From NCBI GenBank assembly GCA_001179505.1, contig CDMY01000281.1:62001-126000 (forward strand): a stretch of DNA of 64,000 bases, read 5' to 3'. How positions within the stretch are numbered: position 1 is the first letter of the stretch; every line of letters begins with the position of its first letter. Origin of the DNA: Vitrella brassicaformis CCMP3155. Lineage: Eukaryota > Protista > Chromerida. Both the position numbers and the translations under genes were made by a program. A model generated the notes under the pieces. It was given only the letters and a program-made list of their open reading frames with translations, had not been told where the DNA came from and did no database searches. Positions 1-34,780 of this stretch are shown here, piece by piece.

Positions 1-115
1 AAGGCAGGCACTTTTCGTGTCTCTGCGTACTCTTACGCCTTGCCCCCCTCTCTCGCCCTCTCTGTCCGCACCTAATCTGCTCTATATCTCCCTCCCTCCC
101 TCCCCCCAGCGTCAC

Positions 116-3100
116 TCACTCCATCTCCGTCACGGTGGCGGGGAAGACGCGTCGATAGGCCGCTCTATAAGCGTTGACGTACTCGTTGTCCTTCGTGGGC
201 CGCCCCACCACGCTTGCCACCGAGTGCCTCGGCCCCTTCCCGCCCCCTCCCCGGCCGACGACATGAGTCAGCGCCCTCCGCACAGCCGACCCAACCTCCT
301 CCTCTCTCTCGTGCGACAGCCGCAGGCACCTCTCATAGCCCCCCAGCACCTGCCCGTAGACCCGCGCCACCTCAGCCCAGGTCAGGCCTGCCTGCTGGAA
401 GGCGCACTTGACGCGAACGTTGCAGGTGTCCTTGAGAGAAGGGTCGGTGGAGGTGGGGAGGTCGTCTGCTGGGAGGGTGAAGGTCGTGTGGTGGGGGAGG
501 TGGGTCTTGAAGGTGACGAGGCCGCCCCGGACGTCGACGCGCTTGACACAGGGGGAGTGGCGATGGGAGAAGAGGGCAACGAAGTCGGCTCGGGGGGTGT
601 TGCTCATCAGCCGATAGGTACCCTCCTGATCACATAGAGGGAGGGAGAGGTGCCGCCTCGTGCGGTGTGGTGTGTCTGCGTACCGGTCGTTTGAGTGTGA
701 TGCGTGCGGTGTGTGCCCGCAGCGTCTCCACCACCCGAAACGCATAGCGATATCGCATCCGATGCCGAGACGACAGACTCCTGACACACACGCACGCACA
801 CAAAGGCTCGATAGATTGCAGCACGAACAGGAAGGACGGCATTCCCTCTCCTTCATTGGCCCACCCCACCGACCTGAAGTGTATTCTCTGCGGTGCCTGT
901 GTGGGGTCTGAGGGGTCCTCGATGCGCACAAACAGCCCCCCGGCCTCTATCACATACCGCAGCTCTCTGCTACCCTCCAACACCTGCGCACGAGGGCCCC
1001 TCTCCCTCGAGACGTCGCCATCCGACCGGTCGCCGCTCTCCCCCACCTTCCCTCGATAGGGAAACACGAAGTCGCCCCGCTCGGTCACCTCCATCAGCCC
1101 CCACTTGGTGGTCACCTTCTGGGGCGGAACGTCTCGGGTGTCAAGCAGCTCCTGCAGCATGCCGTCCTCCTCACCCCTCATCGCTGGGGCGGTGGTGGTG
1201 GTGGTGGTGGCAGCGCCGCCCTCCTGGCCACCGCCGACGCCGACACCCCCACCACCGCCACACACCCCGCCGCCCACCGACATGCCCTCGTTGTTGCCGC
1301 CCCGGTCTGACTGCGCCGAGTGCTGGCTGATGCCGTATGCCGGGATGATCGAGTTCATGCTCTGCTCCAGGGACCGGTGCGACATGGCGCAGGACGAGCC
1401 GCACACCGACCCACCTCCTCCCCCGCCCCCCACTTGTTGTGCAGGGGACCCCCCACTGCTCTGAGGGAAAGGCACGGGCGTCGGCAAGGGGAAGAAGGAC
1501 CCACCACCACCCATTATCTGCTGTCTGCGGTGCGAGTGCAGGTCGGTCATGCTCAGCGGCCCTGCGGGGGTCACTCGCTGCGATGGGGCGAGGGAGGGCG
1601 ACTGGCCGGGCGTCGAGAAGCCGTACTGCGCTCCCCCAAACAGGGGATCATATGGCGACGACAGCTGAGGGTGTGCTCGCGCCGGCGTGTTGGAATACGA
1701 CCGCAACACCAGCGACGGCGGGATGGGGGGGCGGGGGAAATCGCCCTGTGACGGCGAGGACCGGGGAGGGAGGTAGGAGGGTGGCGGGTGGCTGCCCGTG
1801 GGGCTGGAGGGGCCGAACGGGCCTGTGAAGGGGATGTGCAGGCCTGCAGCATCCCTCTCAGGGCTCCCCCGCGGCAAAGGTGGCTTGACTTTGACATTGT
1901 GCGGGTCCGCCCTCGCCGTCCAGGGCGACGCAAACCTCTCATCATCAAGCCTCGGCAGCAACGGCGGCGGTTGATGGACATCGGCCTCACCTGCCGTGTC
2001 AGCCGGTGGCCTCGGCCGCTCTCGTGAGCCGCTCCGGTTGCTTCGGCGGTCATCCAGCACGTGCACATGTGGGCTCGCCATGGGCCGTGACGGGCTAGCG
2101 AGTGGCGAAGAGAAGGGAACCCCGCCCCTCCTCGCGTCTGGCTCGGGTGAGGCAGCCTGGTGGGTCGTGTGGCTGTGGCTGTGGCTGTGGCTGTGATGGC
2201 TGGGCAGCGGCTGCCTCGCCGGGCTCATCCGCACAGCCGACGGCGCCATGGCCATGGCGCCCCCATGATCGCTCGACGTGCGGGACATCATTGCACTGGA
2301 CAGCTGCGAGAAGTGCCGAGAGTCGTCTTCCTTTTCCCTGATGTCGTGGGTGTGGGTGCCTTCGCCGCCGCTGCTGCTGGAGCTGGTGCTCGGCCGGTCT
2401 CGCGCCTTCTTGATCCGGGGAATGTCCACCACTTTGTTCTTCTGCGGCAGCACACTGGTAGGGAGGCCGGCTGTTGCTGCTCCTGCTCCTTCTCCTGCCG
2501 CTGATGCCGACGCCGACGCCGAGCGAATGGTGGCGGTGACCCCGGGGACCTTCAGCGGCAGACTGCCGATTGACGGGGAGGAGAACGAGTTGTCTGCGTC
2601 AGAGTTGGAGCTGTAGGTCAGCGACGATGCCCGTGAGTCGCGCAGAGGGTTCCTGCTCTTCGCCGCCTTGCTCCCTTCCCCGCCGCGCTTGTTGTTGTGC
2701 CTGTCGGCCTGGGGGTCCTTGTTCGGCGACAGGTGGATGGCCGTCCCGGTGGACGAGCGGCGCGACGAGGTGCACCCCGACTCCTCGCCAGCAGATATCC
2801 GCCGCGGCGCGCCGTCGCCCCGCCGACAGGTGGTCATTGGCGAGACGGAGCTGTTGCTGTCGTCCACCTCATCCAGCCACTTGGGGTCATACCGGATGCG
2901 CAGCGGCAGGTCCACTGGCCCCTGCGGACGGCTGTGGTCCTTTACCGCACCTTTGGCCGCCAGCCGGAGGTAGGCGCCTCGAGCGGAGGAGTGGTCGCCA
3001 TGCACGTGGACGATCGACGATGCCGCCGAGCTGTCCGTCGCCCTCTCCCTCTCCCTCTCGGACAGCCTCGCTTCGTCATGCCCGCCACGGTCCAGGTCTA

Positions 3101-4008
3101 TCGGCAGCTCCTCCAACCTCGCCGCTGGCGACTGCGGCTCCTCCCTCTCCTCTTCGTGAATCACCGGAATGCCCTGACCCGGCGGCCACCTGGTAGCCAT
3201 GGTGGACGACACCTGGCTCACCGGCCGCACTCGGTGGTGGTCCCTCTCTCTCTCCCTCTCCCTCTCCCTCTCGCGCGGCGAGGCCATCATTGGCCCATGC
3301 GACACGAGAGTGGCCGAGGTGGAGAGGTCCGACATTCCCGCACGGCCGGGGAACGGCGGGGACGACTGGTCGGACGGCGGGGGTGCGGGATACGGTGACC
3401 GCTGACACGTGTCGATGGTCCTGGGTGGTCTGAGGGAGTCTGCGTCGCTGGACGGGGCGGGGGTGTGTGGGTGTGGGTGTGGCGGCAGGGGAGGCTTGTC
3501 TGGCGACGGGAGGTGGCGAGGCGGCACTGGGGGGGCGTCGTTCAGAAAGGGATGGTCGATGAGCGAGGGCAGGTTGGGCTGCAGGCAGTAGGTGGGATCC
3601 AGCAACCGACGCAACAAGTCGGCAGCCTGCCAACAGACACACCGAACAAACAGCCCAAACAAATGCCGCCCGCGATGTGGTGAACGAATGCACTTCTCCT
3701 CTCTCTCACCTGGGGCGATACGGCGTCCGGCAGTGGCTCGAGGTCGCTCGCCGTCCGCTCGAACGCCCTCACCGCGCCCACGCCCCGGCCCTCCACACGC
3801 CAGGGCGCCCTCCCCACAATCAGGTGGTACAGCACGCCGCCAGCCTGCCAGAGGTCGCCGGCAGCCTCATACTGCAGGGGGGGCAGATGCGATGCCGACT
3901 GCGGTATGGCTGGAATGAGCCCCGCCTGGCCGAAGTCGGTCAGGCGCAGGTCTAGCTCACGGGTTAGCAGGAGATTGGACAGGCTGATGTTGCTGAACAC
4001 CCAGAGAC

Positions 4009-4050
<42 letters not shown>

Positions 4051-4809
4051 AGAGGGAGGGAGAGTGTTGTTGTGGTTTTGATGGCATGCTTGATTGATGC
4101 CTGCCCACGCATCGCACTTACCCGTGTTTGACGTTGTTTTGGTGGAGGAAGTGTATGGTCTGCAGCAGCCGGCGCATCCACGACTGCACCCACAACTCGG
4201 GAAGCCCAACACTACCTGAACGAACGAACGCACCAACACCAACACCAACACAGAAAGAGGGACACACACAGAGAGAGGGAGAGAGTGAGTGCAGCTGGCT
4301 GGCTGGTACGGTACACCTGACCTCTCTGGTGCTGAAAGTTGAGCAGGTATCTCTTGAGGTCGCCATTGTCACAGTACTCGAGCACCAGCCCCTTGTGGTG
4401 GCGCGTGTCAAACGCCCCAAGCACGCGGCATATCCCATGGTGCCCAGCGCTCCCCTGGGTCTCGCGCATCGGGTTCGACCACACCAGATTGTGATAGAAA
4501 ATCTCGTTGTCCACCTGTGTGTGATGCAGACGTAGGACACACAAACCCACTCCATAGGACCATAGAGCCATGCATGCACTGCCAGTGCTCTCCTGTCGCC
4601 CTGTCACCTACTTGTGCGCGCAGCTCCGGCGTGTCCAGCTGGTTCTTTGTGTAGGTCTTGAGAGCGACCGGCCCCGCGTGGCTGGCGCCGTCGGTGTGGA
4701 GCACATTGGGCACGGCCCGCCAGACGGTGGCGTGCCGGGTCCCCCCGATGTGCTCCTTGCCGTGGAAGTTCGAGAGATCAAAGCAGCGCTGCTGCCCGCC
4801 GCATTCCAT
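116..4809 (-). CDS. PLK4: Polo-like kinase 4 (SAK/PLK4)-like protein, multi-exon; degenerate kinase domain plus cryptic polo box
   Basis: Spliced N-terminus has VALK, [36 protein letters not shown] (human PLK4: [23 protein letters not shown]) and DLWQAG. After a long S/P-rich linker, the C-terminus LDTRDVPPQKVTTKWG...RYRYAFRVVETLRAHTARITL...YRLMSNTPRADFVALF...GYERCLRL matches the PLK4 PB1-PB2 pattern (KYQYASRFVQLVRSKSPKIT...CILMENSPGADFEVWF...GHRICLAL). Confidence 0.85.
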
Positions 4810-5278
4810 CGCTCACCGCAAACCCATCACGCCAACGCTATCACAAGACGCCTCACCGAGGCCCTATCGACGGCCACATGCCTCACAAATGGCTGCAAGT
4901 GGCTCATCGCTCTCGTGGCTTAGGGTCCTTGTGAAACGGGATACTGAGAATGGCGAGCTTTTTTTTGTTGAGGAATTCTTGCGTTGAGGTTTTGAAGGCC
5001 TGATTTGATCAGATGCTGCCGAGCAAGCTCGAGATCGGCAGCATTGCGGCTGCGACAGCGGGTCTCAAGCGCCTCAGGGGAGAGCCATGCGGGGCAACGA
5101 GCGAGTCGCCTCACAAGGTAGGGGAGGTGGGCAGCACGACCCGACCAGAAGGGCAGGCTTCAAGTTGCCGCAGCGCAATGCCTCACTCCCACGTTGCCGG
5201 CCATTTCTGCCGTTGTGTTGACCGTGGGTATATACCGTCTTGCGTGTGTTGCAGAGGCGTTGCTACAATGTGCCGCTG

Positions 5279-7196
5279 ATGAAGCCGCCCCTGCCCGCCC
5301 CTCCGCCGCAGGGCGAAGTGCCAATTGCACCAAACTCTGACAACGGGGCCTCGGTGTGTGAGCTGACGACAGTCAGTCAGCCGATCGTGGCCGCGCGTGT
5401 GTATGTGTGTGTGATGGTCTTCCTTCGTGTGTGTGGGGCTGTTTGTTTGTTGTCAGGGTCGGCCGGTGCAGGCAGCGTGGAGCAGCGAGGAGGACGCCCA
5501 CCTGTACCATCTGGTCATTACCTGTGGCTCCAACAGGTGGGCAGTGCAGTGCCGCACAGAGAGCAGGCAGCGGCGGCGGCTCGGCTGTGGTTCATTCAGA
5601 CATCCGTGTGCTCTGGCTGGCCTCCCTCCCTCCCTCCCTCCCTCCCTCTGTGTGTTGTGCGTCCGTCAGGTGGCGCGACGTGGCCGCGGCCCTCAACCAC
5701 AAGTGGCACAACAACAGGACACGTAAGCTCCTCTTGTGTGCTATGGGCACCCGCCATTCGGCATTCCACATCTGTGTCGGTTTGTTCAGCGAAGCACTGC
5801 CGTGAGCGTTGGGTGCTGCACGTCGACCCCACCATCAAAAAGTTAGTCTCAGAGCCTTGTGTGCACCGACTGACTGGCACACAGGCAGGCAGACACATGT
5901 GGTTGTGTGCTCTGTGCGCCTGCACTGCACTCAGGGGCGAGTGGACCGAGGAGGAAGACCACCTCATCGTCGCCAAACAACGAGAATGGGTTCGTCACAG
6001 CGAGCCACGACACTTTACTGGTTGTCTGTGTGCGACGGACGTTGCCTGGTTGTGTCGTCTGTGTGCTCACTCACAGGGCAACTGTTGGGCTGACATCAGC
6101 CGTTGTCTGGAGGGCCGTGCGGTGCAGGACGTCAAGAACAGGTGGCACCAGCTGTGGCGGCTCGCGCAGCGACGCGACTTCCAGTCCATTCAGTTCGACG
6201 CCACCGACCCCAAGGAGGACCAACACATAAGGCGTACGCAATGCTTCCCCTGTCTGTGTCTGTGCTGTTGGATGGATGCCCTTCTGTCTGCCTGGTGTGG
6301 TGTGTGTCTGCAGTATCAGCCGTCATCTATATGCTGCACCATGGCCACAGCGCCCCCAAGACCACCACCACCACCACCAGCAAGACCAAAGGAACCGCCT
6401 CGCCACAAGAAGAAGGAGGAACACCCGGCCCGCTCCCTCCCCTCCCCACACCCCCTTCGATGCCTCCCCTGCCCTCCCCCTCCCCCGAGCCCTCCCCCTC
6501 ACTCTCCCCACCCACACACACACACGCCCACGCCACAAGGGGCGGCGGCAACGGCGTGAGCAGCGACTACCTTAACTACCTCTGGGTCATATCCCTCTTC
6601 GAGGCGCAGCTCAACGCCACTCTCGCCAAGGACAAGGACGGCACCAAGGATATTGCTAATGCTCCTGCTGCTGCTGCTGCCGGCGGTGGGTCGGCAGATG
6701 GATCAGCTGGTCCGTTGGAGGGATTGACGGCCAGCGAGCTGATCGAGGCACAGACGAGGTTTGTGCAGGACTACGTGGGCAGGCAGCTCAGGGAGGGGGG
6801 AAGTGGTGGCAGCGGCGGCAGTGGCAGTGGCGGCAGTGGTGGAGGGGACATGCCACTGCACCCAGGTAAAGTGAGTTGTTGGGTTAGGGTGACTGACGGA
6901 CGAATGAACAATGGCTGTTCTGTCTGTCCGTCTGTCTGTCTGTGTCTGTGTCTGTGTCTGTTGTGTCAGCCTTGCGGGCTCTGTCGTCCTTCTCGTCGGC
7001 GGCATCGGCTGGTGGTGGTGGAGGGGAAGCTTGCAACCACCTCCCCTTCCCGCCGTCACTCTTCCCATCACCCGACCCACAACACCCACAGCACCCACAC
7101 CAGCAACTGGAGCGGCGACTCGGTGTCTCACTCTCGTCGGCAGAAGGTGTCAAGGCGGAGAGGGGCGTGGCTACGGCGCCACTGGCCTTGTCGTGA
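5279..7196 (+). CDS. R2R3-type Myb DNA-binding protein, multi-exon
   Basis: Exons give WSSEEDAHL...RWRDVA...KHCRERWVLHVDPTIKK / GEWTEEEDHLIV...GNCWADISRCLEGRAVQDVKNRWHQL, i.e. two Myb repeats with regularly spaced Trp, then a low-complexity C-terminus. The start codon is uncertain. Confidence 0.85.
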
Positions 7197-8126
7197 CTAA
7201 GGACCGGGGGTGTGTGCCCCAAATGTATTTAACGGCGGATGCATGTGTGCCTGTGTCTGTGTCTGTGTGCGTGTGTGCGCGAACCTCTGTCTCTGCTGCC
7301 TGTGAGAGGGTGTATGTGTGTGTGTATCGGTGCTGCACGCACGATTCATCCGATTCTACTTACCGAGCGGCCTATTATGCCTGTGACCCCGTAGGTCAGA
7401 TCAATCGACTTATTTGGTTTGCGACTGATTTGGCTTGTAGTGAGGTGACCGGCGGCCAAGTGAACAGAGCAGAGACAGAACAGGACAGGACAGGACACAG
7501 CACGACTAAAGTTTTTCCGCGGGCTAGGCTTGTTTCGGTATCCTGAGTACGCGATGGCCCTTGTTGTCTGCTGGCTGGCTGGCCGATGAGTCAGTCGGTT
7601 AAGGTGTGCTCCTAGTGGTATGTGATCCGGATGCCATCACGGAAGTGGATAACAACAATTCAGTGCTGTATACTTGTCTCTCCTGCACCTTTCTGCTCGT
7701 CTGTCTGTTCGTCTGGTGGGGGCGTGTGTTGATGTCGCGTCGGGTGACGATGGCAGACGTGTGTTACTCCCACATGCGGCCGCCTCCGTCACCAGACGCG
7801 CCGGCACCGACACACGCCCCGCACCCGGCCATTGATGGACACACCGATGGCTGGATGTGTGCATGTGTTTCTCTCTGTCTGTCTGGGTTTGTGCTGGCTG
7901 TGTATGTGTATGTCTGTTCATCCAGACCGACCCATTGAGGCCGGCAGAGAGAGCAAAGACGGTCATGTGCATAAAATTAAGTGTCTTCCCCCGTTCGTTG
8001 ACTACGCAACAACGTGACGAGCGAAGCATTCGTGTCGATTTCCACTCTTCTCGGGTCCATCCATCCATCCGTCCATCCCTCCATCCATGTGTACACCCCA
8101 ACAGCATCGGTCGGTCGGTCTGTTGG

Positions 8127-9645
8127 TCAGGCGAGTGCCGCTTTGGGTTTGTTGAAGAATGGCTTGAGCGACCACTCCACCTCCACGTCGCGCATGTCCA
8201 CCGAACCCAACTCTATCCGATACAGACGCATCACGAACCTGCACACACAAAAGAGCACAGAAACGTACGTATCTCTTGCTCGGTTCGCACCCACCCATCT
8301 CTCGCCCCATCGACCCACCTCGGGCCCGCCTCAGTGAGCTGCAACTGCTCCTTCTGCTTCTCTTCTGCCCTCTCCTTCTTGCCCTTCGGCTGCCTCTCCT
8401 TCTTGCCCTTCGGCTGCCTCTCCTTCGCCTCGTCCTTGCCCGTCGCCGCCTGGCCTGCATCCACTGCGCACACACACACACACACCAACAACAACAACAG
8501 CACACATGGTACACGCCCTGTGTGTCTTCCTTCCCCGGTTGCGTGACTGACCGGCAGCAGCAGCAGCAGCAGCAGCAGCCTCTCCTCCGCCGGGCTTTGC
8601 CTTTGCCCACGTGTGGTGTCTGAAGTGGATGAAGTCGCCCTGGTTGATGAAGCTCATGCACCGCTGGCCAAGCGGCGCCGCCGGCGGGAACAGGTGCTTC
8701 AGGATCGTTTCGACGCGACGACCCAGCTTCGACTCGAACTGGTGGAAGATCAAGTGCGGGGAGACCTGCAGACCAGACACACACCACATCCCGAGGGAGG
8801 GAGAAGGGATGGGATGAGCGAGCGTCTCGTCTGCCGTCCACCCTCCGTGCTTCTCACACACACACTTCTGAGATGTTTGGCGGCTTCTTGGGCAGGTCGT
8901 GCCGCAGGGCCACCTCAGACAGACCGAAGTAGGCCGTGGGGCCATACGGCAGGTGGGAAACGATCAGCCCATCAGGCTCGCCTTCAGAACAAAGATGCAT
9001 CCAATGAAAGCCAACACGACCACAGACAAAATTTTCCAGATGGATAGATATCACCTCCCTCCCTCCCTCCCTCCGACCCTCTGTGCGTGCGCACCTCTGT
9101 GCTCGTGAACAATGACTAGATCTGTGACGTCGTTTGTTTGGCAGAGTCGCACGAGGTCCTTGAGGATGTAGGCACCGCGGTTGATGCGCTGGGAGGTGGG
9201 GAACAGCAGCCGCAGCTCCTTGGCAAACTGCGCCAGCCGGCTAGACGGGTCGCGCGCCGTCGTTATCAGCACCTTCGGGTCTTTCACTCCTGCAGGCCAG
9301 TCAGTCGGTCAAGACACACACACACCACACAGACAGAGGCAGCAACAGCCGAGAAATGGGGCTCAGTCGTCCATCGTGGCATCGCGGTCTGGCATCTCAT
9401 CTACCTCTACCTGCGTAGGCGTATTCGTCGTCGATCTGCGAGCGCATCTGCATGGTCCGGTCATCGTCGAGGTCCAGCGTGGGCCTCAGCCGCTTGTCGG
9501 CGCCCCTGAGCTCGGTGGGAATGCTCTTGCCGCCCTCGAGGGCGTCCTTGAGCTTCCGCTTGCGGTCGCTCACGGCGCGCTCCTTGTCCTCGATGCTCTT
9601 GCGGTAGAGATACTCCTTCCGCAGACGAACGTTCCGACGCAACAT
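8127..9645 (-). CDS. IMP4: U3 snoRNP protein Imp4 (Brix domain)
   Basis: MLRRNVRLRKEYLYRKS...DDEYAYAG / DPKVLITTARDPSSRLAQFAKELRLLFP..QRINRG...VHEHRG / PDGLIVSHLPYGPTAYF / PHLIFHQFESKLGRRVETILKHLFP / EAGPRFVMRLYRIELG..EVEW. Confidence 0.95.
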
Positions 9646-9956: not shown

Positions 9957-11207
9957 ATGGCGTGCTGCTCGACGGGCGTCGTAACCGGCACAGCGCGGCA
10001 GGCACCACCATGGCGACAAGTAAGTGAAGTCCTGGCACAGATCACATCGCACACAGCAAAGCACAGCACTGCTGACACACACACTTGCCTGTCTGTCTGT
10101 CTGTCTATCTGTCTGTGTGTGTGTGTGGTTTGTCAAAGGGACTCGGACTTTGTTTGTGGGACTTGACGGCGAGGAGTTCTTAGTCATCCGTCCCGACGGC
10201 GAGGAGTCCCGGCTGTGCAGATCCATCAAATCAGAGCTGCACGCCAGGTGCGCCGGCGTCAGCATAGAGTTCGTGCAGCCATACGGCCGACGAGACCACC
10301 CCTATCGACTGCTCCCCGGCTGCCCCTCCGTATGGCTCGCTCTCAAGCGCCGACCGGTTCTCAACTCCTCGGCGACCGACAGCCGCAAGAGGCCGCGGTC
10401 CACACCGGCGGCATCGGAGGACCTCGCAACCACCAGAGAGCTGCTGAGGAAAGGTACACAGCCCCCCCCCCCCCCCCCCCCCCNNNNNNNNNNNNNNNNN
10501 NNNNNNNNNNNNNNNNNNNNNNNNNNNNNNNNNNNNNNNNNNNNNNNNNNNNNNNNNNNNNNNNNNNNNNNNNNNNNNNNNNNNNNNNNNNNNNNNNNNN
10601 NNNNNNNNNNNNNNNNNNNNNNNNNNNNNNNNNNNNNNNNNNNNNNNNNNNNNNNNNNNNNNNNNNNNNNNNNNNNNNNNNNNNNNNNNNNNNNNNNNNN
10701 NNNNNNNNNNNNNNNNNNNNNNNNNNNNNNNNNNNNNNNNNNNNNNNNNNNNNNNNNNNNNNNNNNNNNNNNNNNNNNNNNNNACAGCCCCCCCCCCCCC
10801 CTCCCCACACACACATGGACACGCAGAAACCTAGGGGGTTGCTGTTGTCTACTGATTTGTTAGTGCGTACGCATCGGTATCTGCCGCCCGAAACCGAATC
10901 GCCCGACTCGAGCACGGTGTCGGGGGAGGCGGCCGATGACGTCCAGACGGGCGCCAGCAGGGCGTGGGCACGATCACAGCTGGTGCCCTCAAACACACCC
11001 GTGTGGCTTTTGAGCGTGGGGCTGTATACGCCCGGCCGGCCGCCAGACCCCCCTCTGGCGCCGGGGGCCAACCTGGGCATCCTGGAGCTAGAGATGGAGG
11101 GCGGCGCCGACACTCTCACCATCCTGACGCTGGACGTCACTTTCAACGGTGAGGGAGGGAGAGCGACCGATCCGATAGATATGCACAGCCAGGGCAGGCT
11201 TCCGACA

Positions 11208-33057: not shown

Positions 33058-34780
33058 GCATACACCACCCAGAACCCTTCCCTAGTGCAAAATTAACGTT
33101 ATGTGCCTTTTCTCTCGCTTGTCTGTTTCGGCTTGGCTGATAAGGAGACCTTCCTAGTCCGGAGGAGCTCTCCAAGAGCAGCGGGCAACGGCAGCTTGTG
33201 TAGCTAGCGGGAGGGCAAGGAGGGGGATGGAAGCTTGTTGTTGATATGATCCTTGGGTGGATGATCGTTTGTTCGTTGTTCTGCACTGCCTTGCATACGT
33301 GGCGGAGAGGTGTGTGGTGTGGTTTGCTGAATGCAGTCGTGGCAGCGAGGAGAGAGGGGGGTCGACGGGCATGGATGGATGGATGCGGGGGATGACATTC
33401 ACGGCACACAATGAGACCTGAGACGCATGAGGGTGGAGGGGACTGAGGGGAGAAGGGAGAGGGCTCTTTGACTGAGCTGAGTCTTTTTCTATCTAATCGT
33501 CGATGGCGTATCGGTGGCAGCACACACATGCCGCCAGTCTGTCGTGTTCAGCTGAACATGTAGCGGCACGCGGTAGAAAAAGAAAAAAGTCTCTCCTCTC
33601 GGCCGACGCATTTTCTCTCTCCGGTACCGACACTCTTTCTCCACTCTCGACCGGGGTAACCATACACCACACCGAAACGAAAAAGAAAGAGACACTTCTC
33701 TAACAGCCGTAGCCGACACACAGGTAGAGGTGTGTCAACGTGCGGTTACACACCATATCACACACCTGGAGGTGGCGTGTGTGGGTGTGGCAGAACTCGC
33801 CGTCAATCTTCAAACAGACAGAGACACACACGATAGGGACAGTATGTCCTGTGTAGTGGCTCCATGTTAGTGACCTAGAGTTTTCCCTTGAAGTGCCATG
33901 TGACCTGGGCGGTCCGAGAACCCGACACCCCGTACTTGAAGTTCCCGGAACGCGGCCCAGTGAATGTCTGGTTCAGGCGCCGGCCGGTGCCTGTCTCAAC
34001 TTCAACGTCGAGCTGTCAGCATGCGAATCAGAAACAGACAGAAATGTTGGAGAAAACACAGGACAAATACCTGGCCGTTGGCAAAGCACATTGTCCTGGT
34101 CTTGCCATTCAATTTGTCCTTGAAGGAGTAGGTGTCTCCATCGCATGGCTTCTCCTGCTCCTCCTCAGACGAGCGGGGCTCCTTGATGCACTTGCCCGTG
34201 CCCACTGGTGGGAGCCAGTCGATATCCGAGGACACCTTGTCGGCATTCGGCCAGGACACCTTCTCGACAGCGCACACCTTGGGCGCCTCGCACCCCTTGG
34301 CGTAACTAGGGACCCACACAACATCCCACCTCGCGAGGTCTTTCTCTGACCAAATGAAATAGAGCAGTGGAGACAAGACTTTGTGGGGATGCCGATGAGC
34401 CCTCACTCAAGTCGGTCCACTTCTCCTCTTTCCCAGCCTTGAAGAACACCGAGCAGGATGAGAAGAACAATGAGTCCCAGAATGGGCCTGTGCACATCGG
34501 ACACAATGTCATGATGGCATTGCATCCAGTGCCACTCGCAGCTATGCCGCGCCTCGCCCACCGTCATGTGCCTGGAAGAACGCTGCAGCCGTGCCGCTCT
34601 GCGGCTGTCCAAGGTCTGCAATCAGAGCCATGAAGAACGTCATGGTGGGTGGGCTGAGCTCAAATCGAGTCGTACAAGTGTGCAGTGAGCTGACAACGAA
34701 CCATTGCAGTCGGGCCCTTGCAGAGCGCATCCCTCTCCAGTGATCACGTCAGCAGCGGAGAGCCGAGCAAGGAGCAGGAA

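Follow-up and report, generated by a model that had tools for sequence, protein, structure and literature searches.

Can a gene built on the plan of polo-like kinase 4 (PLK4, or SAK) outlive the catalytic activity of its own kinase domain? In animals, PLK4 is usually regarded as the kinase that sets centriole duplication in motion. The question is raised by a locus of Vitrella brassicaformis CCMP3155, an alga related to malaria parasites and a member of a group reported to have lost polo-like kinases, in which we find one gene assembled from the parts of a PLK4. The window analysed here is a stretch of 64,000 nucleotides (contig CDMY01000281.1, hereafter C281, positions 62001-126000), and the genome that was searched comprises 72.7 Mb in 1064 contigs. 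The explanation we favour, with a probability of roughly 0.6, is that the gene descends from the PLK4 (SAK) family, that its kinase has decayed while its cryptic polo box (CPB) was kept, and that its product is probably a non-catalytic docking protein at basal bodies or centrioles.

The gene lies on the minus strand, from 4809 to 116 of the window. By reading the reverse complement and translating each exon we recovered seven exons, six introns that are all of the GT-AG type, and a product of 1375 amino acids; the interval 3700-4809 covered by the preliminary description of this DNA corresponds to the first four exons. The exon-wise translation is identical to a protein deposited for V. brassicaformis CCMP3155 (P0001, 1375 amino acids), the record of which reads "unnamed protein product" and carries no PLK4 name. 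We regard the gene as a real, intact, intron-bearing gene of V. brassicaformis. The whole-protein analyses reported below were run on the stored P0001 record or its parts; exon pieces were scanned singly against Pfam, and the genome was likewise searched exon by exon.

The catalytic loop is interrupted by intron 3 (3993..4121, 129 nt, GTAAGT...TTCAG, with a CT/GA microsatellite inside), which splits the codon of G162. Exon 3 (4122..4215; residues 131-161 and two bases of G162) encodes the alphaE helix ending in H161 (CAC, 4126-4124), and terminates in ...AAA CAC GG followed by the donor gtaagt at 4121. Exon 4 (3710..3992; the last base of G162, then N163-Q256) opens with C AAC ATC after a pyrimidine-rich tract and a ttcag acceptor ending at 3993, and encodes N163 (AAC, 3991-3989), S165, N168 and the DFG motif (residues 181-183, 3937-3929). 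The spliced loop reads K-H-G-N-I-S-L-S-N, with H161-G162-N163 where PLK4 has H-R-D, and the ...L-S-N-L-L-L-T-R... that follows H-G-N is almost exactly that of PLK4. Alignments to human PLK4 and to a PLK4-kinase hidden Markov model (HMM), built from 34 CPB-bearing PLK4s with the Vitrella protein left out, are gapless across the junction and place H-G-N exactly over H-R-D, indicating that the spliced loop has the expected length. The residue opposite N163 is an Asp in at least 90% of 28 aligned PLK4 kinase domains. No other canonical donor/acceptor pair exists at this place. The preliminary description had read CAC GG / C AAC as H-G-N and allowed that another splice might restore HRD; the exon translations and the identical deposited protein confirm its reading, and none of the 39 open in-frame GT/GC..AG combinations around the junction, each read in its 22-residue context, yields HRD or HxD. 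The one alternative that uses the same strong donor, with an acceptor 9 nt downstream, gives H-G-L, and intron 3 contains no R-D motif in any frame.

The domain around this loop is still recognisable as a kinase. Pfam Pkinase matches P0001 with 73-79 bits, above the cut-off, and the exon-wise scan finds weak colinear Pkinase matches in exons 2, 3 and 4 (profile positions 55-90, 96-121 and 127-198). In a phmmer search of the PDB the best solved relative is human PLK4 (66.5 bits, E 1.9e-17), followed by PLK1 (58 bits) and Aurora A (51 bits). Exon 1 (4612..4809, residues 1-66) carries the start codon, a degenerate glycine loop (G22 G23 T24 R H A) and the VALK lysine K51 (codon 4659-4657); exon 2 (4322..4514, residues 67-130 and the first base of G131) carries the alphaC Glu, E70 (codon 4505-4503), an insertion in the alphaC-beta4 loop, and beta4-beta5. 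Besides K51, which is the VAIK Lys, and E70, the domain retains H161, N168, D181-F-G, the D-x-W-x-x-G of subdomain IX and the H-P-F of subdomain XI. The losses comprise two residues of the glycine loop, its second glycine and its Phe (G to T24, F to H26), the Arg and Asp of the catalytic loop (R to G162, D to N163), the Leu after DFG (L to Q184) and, through a 12-residue deletion, the whole T-x-C-G-T-P-N...E block with the activation-loop Thr and the P+1/APE region. The Arg of subdomain XI, the usual partner of the APE Glu, is replaced by Q272; as the APE block is deleted as well, both partners of this Glu-Arg pair are lost. The activation segment lies in exon 4 (3928-3857), which also encodes subdomains IX-X, and has 24 residues from DFG to DxW without a P+1/APE block; in each of the 26 PLK4s where both motifs could be located it measures 33-39 residues.

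The extent of these changes exceeds what is seen in the PLK4s compared. A count of the columns with at least 90% conservation among the 28 PLK4 kinase domains gives 35 of 58 retained in Vitrella, and 48 of 62 in the true PLK4 that diverges most. The PLK4-kinase HMM gives the Vitrella domain 119-124 bits, compared with 314-458 bits for full-length PLK4s. PLK4s with a CPB as divergent as that of Vitrella (those of a ctenophore and of Coemansia, and two unnamed ones) still score 324-369 bits, so decay has gone disproportionately further in the kinase domain than in the remainder of the protein. In the alignment the losses are concentrated on catalytic and substrate-binding elements and are not evenly spread. 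An AlphaFold2 (AF2) model of the domain is a confident bilobal kinase (mean predicted local distance difference test score, pLDDT, 83.8; predicted template-modelling score, pTM, 0.85), with low confidence only at the alphaC-beta4 insertion and the short activation segment. It matches the structures of Aurora A, PLK4 and PLK1 about equally (template-modelling score, TM, ~0.8), and therefore does not discriminate between the subfamilies.

In sequence terms, a pseudokinase is defined here as a kinase domain in which at least one of the VAIK Lys, the HRD Asp and the DFG Asp is missing. The Vitrella protein falls under that definition: its kinase domain remains recognisable, but has an Asn where the HRD Asp should be. 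The preliminary description had proposed a pseudokinase on these grounds, together with a degenerate glycine loop (IGGTRHATV), the VALK lysine, the alphaC Glu, DFG and a short activation segment lacking APE. All of these features are present, and its proposal holds for the sequence definition, with the Pkinase match above the Pfam cut-off.

The opposite end of the protein carries the second PLK4-like module. Exon 5 (874..3626; residues 257-1173 and two bases of R1174) completes the kinase with subdomain XI (HPF at 281-283, the R-to-Q change at 272), continues through a Ser/Pro/Gly-rich linker of ~790 amino acids without any Pfam domain, and begins polo box 1 (PB1), whose beta strands start at about residue 1085 (window ~1142). 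Exon 6 (684..780, residues 1174-1206) encodes the PB1 helix and the first strand of polo box 2 (PB2), and contains the most PLK4-like stretch (R-Y-R-Y-A-F-R-V-V...). Exon 7 (116..625, residues 1207-1375 and the TGA stop at 118-116) encodes PB2 with a long inserted helix and a closing F-P strand, and no third polo box (PB3). Intron 5 (781..873, 93 nt), between exons 5 and 6, is in frame and stop-free with a weak donor, GTCGGT, and is spliced out in the deposited model; an open frame at 630..3662 reads through it, and its retention would lengthen PB1 by 31 residues, placed between its last strand and its helix.

Pfam recognises no domain in this region, but several more sensitive comparisons identify it and are in agreement. 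Searched with phmmer against PDB sequences, the C-terminus matches the PLK4 CPB only (E 5e-5). An hhalign comparison of residues 1060-1375 with a profile of ten PLK4 CPBs validated by Pfam gives a probability of 98.1% (E 1.3e-13); the 117 aligned columns span PB1 and reach into the beginning of PB2. An HMM made from the same ten-sequence profile scores 48.5 bits on the Vitrella C-terminus. In an alignment of 31 sequences the similarity extends through PB2, which has an insertion of ~50 residues, to the closing F-P strand at the end of the protein. The AF2 model of the C-terminus (pLDDT 79.8, pTM 0.70) shows two successive units of six strands and a helix. A Foldseek search of the PDB with this model returns PLK4 CPBs as all ten best matches (TM 0.71-0.73 by target, root-mean-square deviation ~3.8 A), followed by the CPB of ZYG-1. 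PLK1 polo-box domains superpose poorly on it (TM ~0.3, root-mean-square deviation 13-16 A), which suggests that the two boxes are arranged in the PLK4 and not the PLK1 way. A structure search of the ESM Atlas ranks a PLK4 cluster first; feature searches of the same Atlas gave only polo-box-like leads below 0.9 and no alveolate cluster. By profile-profile comparison, local HMM and structure model, the C-terminus is a PLK4-type CPB consisting of PB1 and PB2.

The third polo box is another matter. In each of the 23 PLK4s measured, the CPB is followed by 119 residues or more; the Vitrella protein has no residues there, and ends with the closing strand of PB2. A PB3 HMM detects nothing of the kind in P0001 or in the six frames of the 10 kb downstream (best score 3.7 bits, compared with 41-119 bits for full-length PLK4s). 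We considered that a downstream PB3 exon had been missed, as the TGA stop overlaps a donor-like GTGAGT (window 115-120), yet nothing resembling PB3 occurs in those 10 kb (C281:52001-62000). The claim of the preliminary description that the polo-box part is intact thus stands for PB1-PB2 and fails for PB3. P0001 also has no DSGxx[S/T] beta-TrCP phosphodegron after the kinase domain. The same test finds no such degron in the PLK4s of chytrids, Coemansia and Gefionella; the degron marks the animal clade and not the PLK4 family, and its absence is therefore uninformative.

The relatives of the protein are all distant. An exhaustive HMMER search of 1.84 billion proteins with residues 1-300 returned 20111 matches, none of them below E 1e-30, and hence no close relative of any lineage. 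Word-index protein searches with exon 5, the C-terminal region and the kinase region recovered only P0001 itself or unrelated kinases. The top-scoring matches, tandem multi-kinase proteins of an oomycete and a ciliate and a mollusc RSK, were set aside as non-orthologous: their scores are sums over several domains, and they have no C-terminal box. Among 153 single-domain matches about 40 have a CPB. Ten of these were identified as PLK4s of chytrids (Cladochytrium, Fimicolochytrium, Spizellomyces, Sorochytrium) and animals, and all ten combine Pkinase, Plk4_PB1 and Plk4_PB2 with an intact HRD. At both ends of the Vitrella protein the nearest relatives are chytrid PLK4s, then animal PLK4s, at an identity of ~30-34%.

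In a kinase tree of 101 rows the terminal branch of Vitrella has a length of 3.76 changes per column, where the median is 0.74; the tree does not place it. In a tree of 35 rows the nearest rows to Vitrella are all PLK4, with a warning for long branches; an approximately unbiased test on these rows does not reject Vitrella and PLK4 as one clade (p 0.705), and the constrained tree is better by 7.9 log-likelihood units. The 35-row tree is compatible with descent from PLK4 and is no proof of it. We therefore call the gene PLK4-like and not a proven orthologue, since PB3 is lacking, the Pfam models of PB1 and PB2 do not match, and the kinase tree does not settle the matter. Of the PLK4 orthologue announced in the preliminary description, what is supported is that both ends of the protein find PLK4 as their best solved relative; strict orthology goes further than these comparisons allow.

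Since chytrid PLK4s, and after them animal PLK4s, are the single-domain relatives nearest to either end, the gene might have reached the chromerid lineage horizontally, from a chytrid-like or other opisthokont donor, and degenerated afterwards, in which case it would not be a vertical orthologue. That no closer relative was retrieved, from alveolates or elsewhere, fits such an origin. We nevertheless think it unlikely. An identity of ~30-34% argues against a recent transfer, and the gene looks at home in its genome, with six host-like introns of the GT-AG type, host-like G+C and a position on a 136-kb contig. A protein combining a kinase with Plk4_PB1 exists in the malawimonad Gefionella, so the family may predate the opisthokonts, and the chytrid sequences may just evolve slowly. 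The kinase tree cannot decide between the two origins.

Descent from PLK4 does not by itself imply a loss of activity, and the protein could be an atypical enzyme of the PLK4 type, with an intact ATP pocket and phosphotransfer that proceeds without the canonical base and activation loop. K51, E70, N168 and DFG are retained and the domain models as a well-folded kinase; some kinases without canonical residues keep weak activity, and loss of the HRD Asp does not always abolish it. Against this, the features associated with catalytic competence in the PLK4 family (HRD Asp, activation-loop Thr and P+1/APE) are all absent, and the independent changes D163N, R162G, G24T, F26H, the deletion of T-x-C-G-T-P-N...E and R272Q have come together in a combination found in none of the 28 aligned CPB-bearing PLK4s. 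With a kinase HMM score about one third of that of any real PLK4, a working PLK4-type enzyme appears improbable.

No second copy was detected in the remainder of the genome. The preliminary description had left room for an HRD-intact paralogue; the exon-by-exon search detected no HRD-intact PLK4 and no PLK1-type gene in the genome, and no paralogue of exon 4. The PLK4 CPB profile matches this gene only, at exon 6, and Plk4_PB1, Plk4_PB2 and POLO_box are found nowhere in the genome above the Pfam cut-offs. Two candidates were rejected. The genome sequence closest to the kinase domain of a chytrid PLK4 (132 bits), on contig C324, encodes a calcium-dependent protein kinase with EF hands. The only sub-threshold POLO_box matches in the genome, weak ones at C331:32674-32802 and 33641-33769, fall in a C5orf34-like_N protein (30.4 bits) whose sequence occurs twice, once to each side of an assembly gap. 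SAS-6_N is found above the Pfam cut-off at two loci, C300:23512-23646 (55 bits) and C200:14184-14324 (40 bits), which indicates that the cartwheel machinery exists. STIL_N has no match anywhere in the genome, which is weak evidence given that STIL is poorly conserved. The undetected STIL_N would fit the absence of PB3, as PB3 binds STIL in animals (PMC4530586).

In a lineage for which loss is on record, the gene could also be a relic without function, a PLK4 on its way to disappearance whose frame is open by chance or because inactivation was recent. The very long kinase branch, the lack of a close relative among 1.84 billion representatives and the lack of a detectable PB3 would agree with this, as would the reported loss of polo-like kinases in apicomplexans and chromerids. 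The state of the gene speaks for something else: 1375 codons over seven exons are still open between canonical splice sites, the kinase residues that determine the fold can still be recognised, as can the whole CPB, both domains give confident models, and the decay is focused on catalytic and substrate elements. There is, in our estimate, little chance that the gene is functionless. Finally, although G162 and N163 are each a single base from Arg and Asp codons, an H-G-N produced by a wrong gene model or a sequencing error at these two critical codons is very hard to credit, as it needs two separate substitutions at a sole canonical junction for which no alternative gives HRD and the deposited annotation agrees, and would leave unaccounted for the activation/APE deletion and ~20 other departures from PLK4-conserved columns that are independent of the junction.

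We thus return to a descendant of the PLK4 family with a decayed kinase and a conserved docking module. Its descent is suggested by the combination of a PLK4-like kinase, a long disordered linker and a PLK4-type CPB. The kinase domain keeps its fold and nucleotide-pocket residues (K51, E70, N168 and D181-F-G) and has lost its catalytic base, so that phosphate transfer is predicted to be very poor or nil. The CPB of animal PLK4 dimerises and docks onto centriolar receptors. By analogy the Vitrella protein probably works through its CPB, which would dimerise and dock it at basal bodies or centrioles as a non-catalytic adaptor, and its kinase-shaped domain may serve as a module for binding or conformational switching that could still bind nucleotide.

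Several observations weigh against this explanation. The basal-body localisation and the scaffold role are drawn purely from animal PLK4, and the step towards PLK4 loss in relatives proposed in the preliminary description is likewise a suggestion. Residual or unconventional activity may persist, because the ATP-pocket residues are intact and loss of the HRD Asp is not always abolishing. Both AF2 models, of the kinase and of the C-terminus, were built on PLK4 alignments and are thus biased towards PLK4-like folds. The kinase phylogeny is subject to long-branch effects and leaves the Vitrella branch unplaced. The protein search found no orthologue from another alveolate, although the genomes of Chromera, Perkinsus and dinoflagellates were not searched directly. 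The splicing described here is that predicted from genomic DNA and given in the deposited model. The HMMER comparison with PB1 and PB2 envisaged in the preliminary description is divided in its outcome: Plk4_PB1 (PF18190), Plk4_PB2 (PF18409) and POLO_box (PF00659) of Pfam have no match on P0001 or its C-terminal part at E up to 1, where real PLK4s score 24-134 bits on the Pfam PB1 and PB2 models, and the local CPB HMM does match.

Some neighbouring features were noted in passing. At ~5080-6800 of the window the plus strand carries a multi-exon gene that is transcribed divergently from the PLK4-like gene and, judged by eye, resembles tandem Myb/SANT repeats (W...EED..L, N-R-W-H-Q-L-W-R). A dip to 28% G+C at 10484-10783 reflects a run of N with poly-C at its sides, an assembly gap and not a biological AT-rich island. 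Elsewhere in the genome, the calcium-dependent kinase at C324:103556-107230 has an extra N-terminal region that looks, by eye, like a carbohydrate-binding module.

We found no paper linking PLK4 and Vitrella, and our literature searches for PLK4 as a pseudokinase, or for the PLK4 cryptic polo box together with Toxoplasma, returned nothing on alveolates. According to PMC4743101, apicomplexan genomes have no clear homologue of PLK4 or PLK1. It is conceivable, if doubtful, that the combination of PLK4 kinase and CPB predates the opisthokonts, that the ancestor of chromerids and apicomplexans had it, and that their lineage gave up catalysis and kept the CPB. What has been described as the loss of polo-like kinases would then be a conversion to a non-catalytic scaffold of centrioles or basal bodies, with Vitrella as an intermediate that still has a kinase-shaped domain. 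With a gene of this build in a chromerid, the statement that PLK4 is the centriole-duplication kinase would need qualifying, and the PLK4 family would, together with the Gefionella protein, reach beyond the opisthokonts. Vitrella would offer a natural experiment on which functions of PLK4 need catalysis and which the docking module alone. In apicomplexan parasites, in which it is not understood how centriole and basal-body assembly is controlled, the gene could also help to direct a search for CPB proteins that lack a kinase.

Among known systems, a parallel outside the opisthokonts is a protein of the malawimonad Gefionella okellyi (P0140, from an EukProt transcriptome), which combines Pkinase (230 bits) with Plk4_PB1 (40.9 bits). 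Like the Vitrella protein it has a non-opisthokont PLK4 architecture and a Gly in place of the HRD Arg (H-G-D), and it joins the Vitrella branch in the 35-row tree, subject to the same long-branch warning. Unlike Vitrella, it keeps the catalytic Asp, has an activation segment of 39 amino acids with G-T-P-N...P-E, and scores 314 bits on the kinase HMM. On its evidence the PLK4 architecture may exist outside the opisthokonts, the record being a transcriptome one with possible contamination. A further PLK4-like protein (P0050) came from a Logan contig of SRR23287145, where an intronless gene at 3001-8142 encodes 1713 amino acids with an intact HRD and a Plk4_PB1 match of 29.5 bits; its linker, of ~700 amino acids, is long as in the Vitrella protein.

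With polo kinases of the PLK1 type the Vitrella protein shares a related kinase domain (58 bits to zebrafish and human PLK1) and the generic polo-box fold, but it lacks a Pfam POLO_box match, and its C-terminal model reaches only the TM of ~0.3 to PLK1 polo-box domains. ZYG-1 of Caenorhabditis, the functional analogue of PLK4, is an active kinase. It is similar in joining a divergent kinase to a CPB (4nkb), and the C-terminal model matches it with E 5e-4; the match is clearly weaker than that to the PLK4 CPB (TM 0.51 compared with 0.71-0.73).

The closest comparison is with the PLK4/SAK of animals and chytrids (human PLK4 with the kinase structure 3cok and the CPB structure 4n7z, and the Spizellomyces "PLK/SAK protein kinase"). 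Vitrella departs from them in H-G-N, in the degenerate glycine loop, in the 12-residue deletion that removes the Thr and P+1/APE, and in R272Q; it has no PB3, has the linker of ~790 amino acids and the PB2 insertion of ~50 residues, and stays below the Pfam thresholds for PB1 and PB2. The DSGxxT degron separates it from the animal PLK4s, though the chytrid PLK4s lack that degron too. With PLK4/SAK it nonetheless shares the same order of parts: an N-terminal kinase with the characteristic context of the catalytic loop, a long linker, and a tandem PB1-PB2 CPB with the F-P strand at its end.

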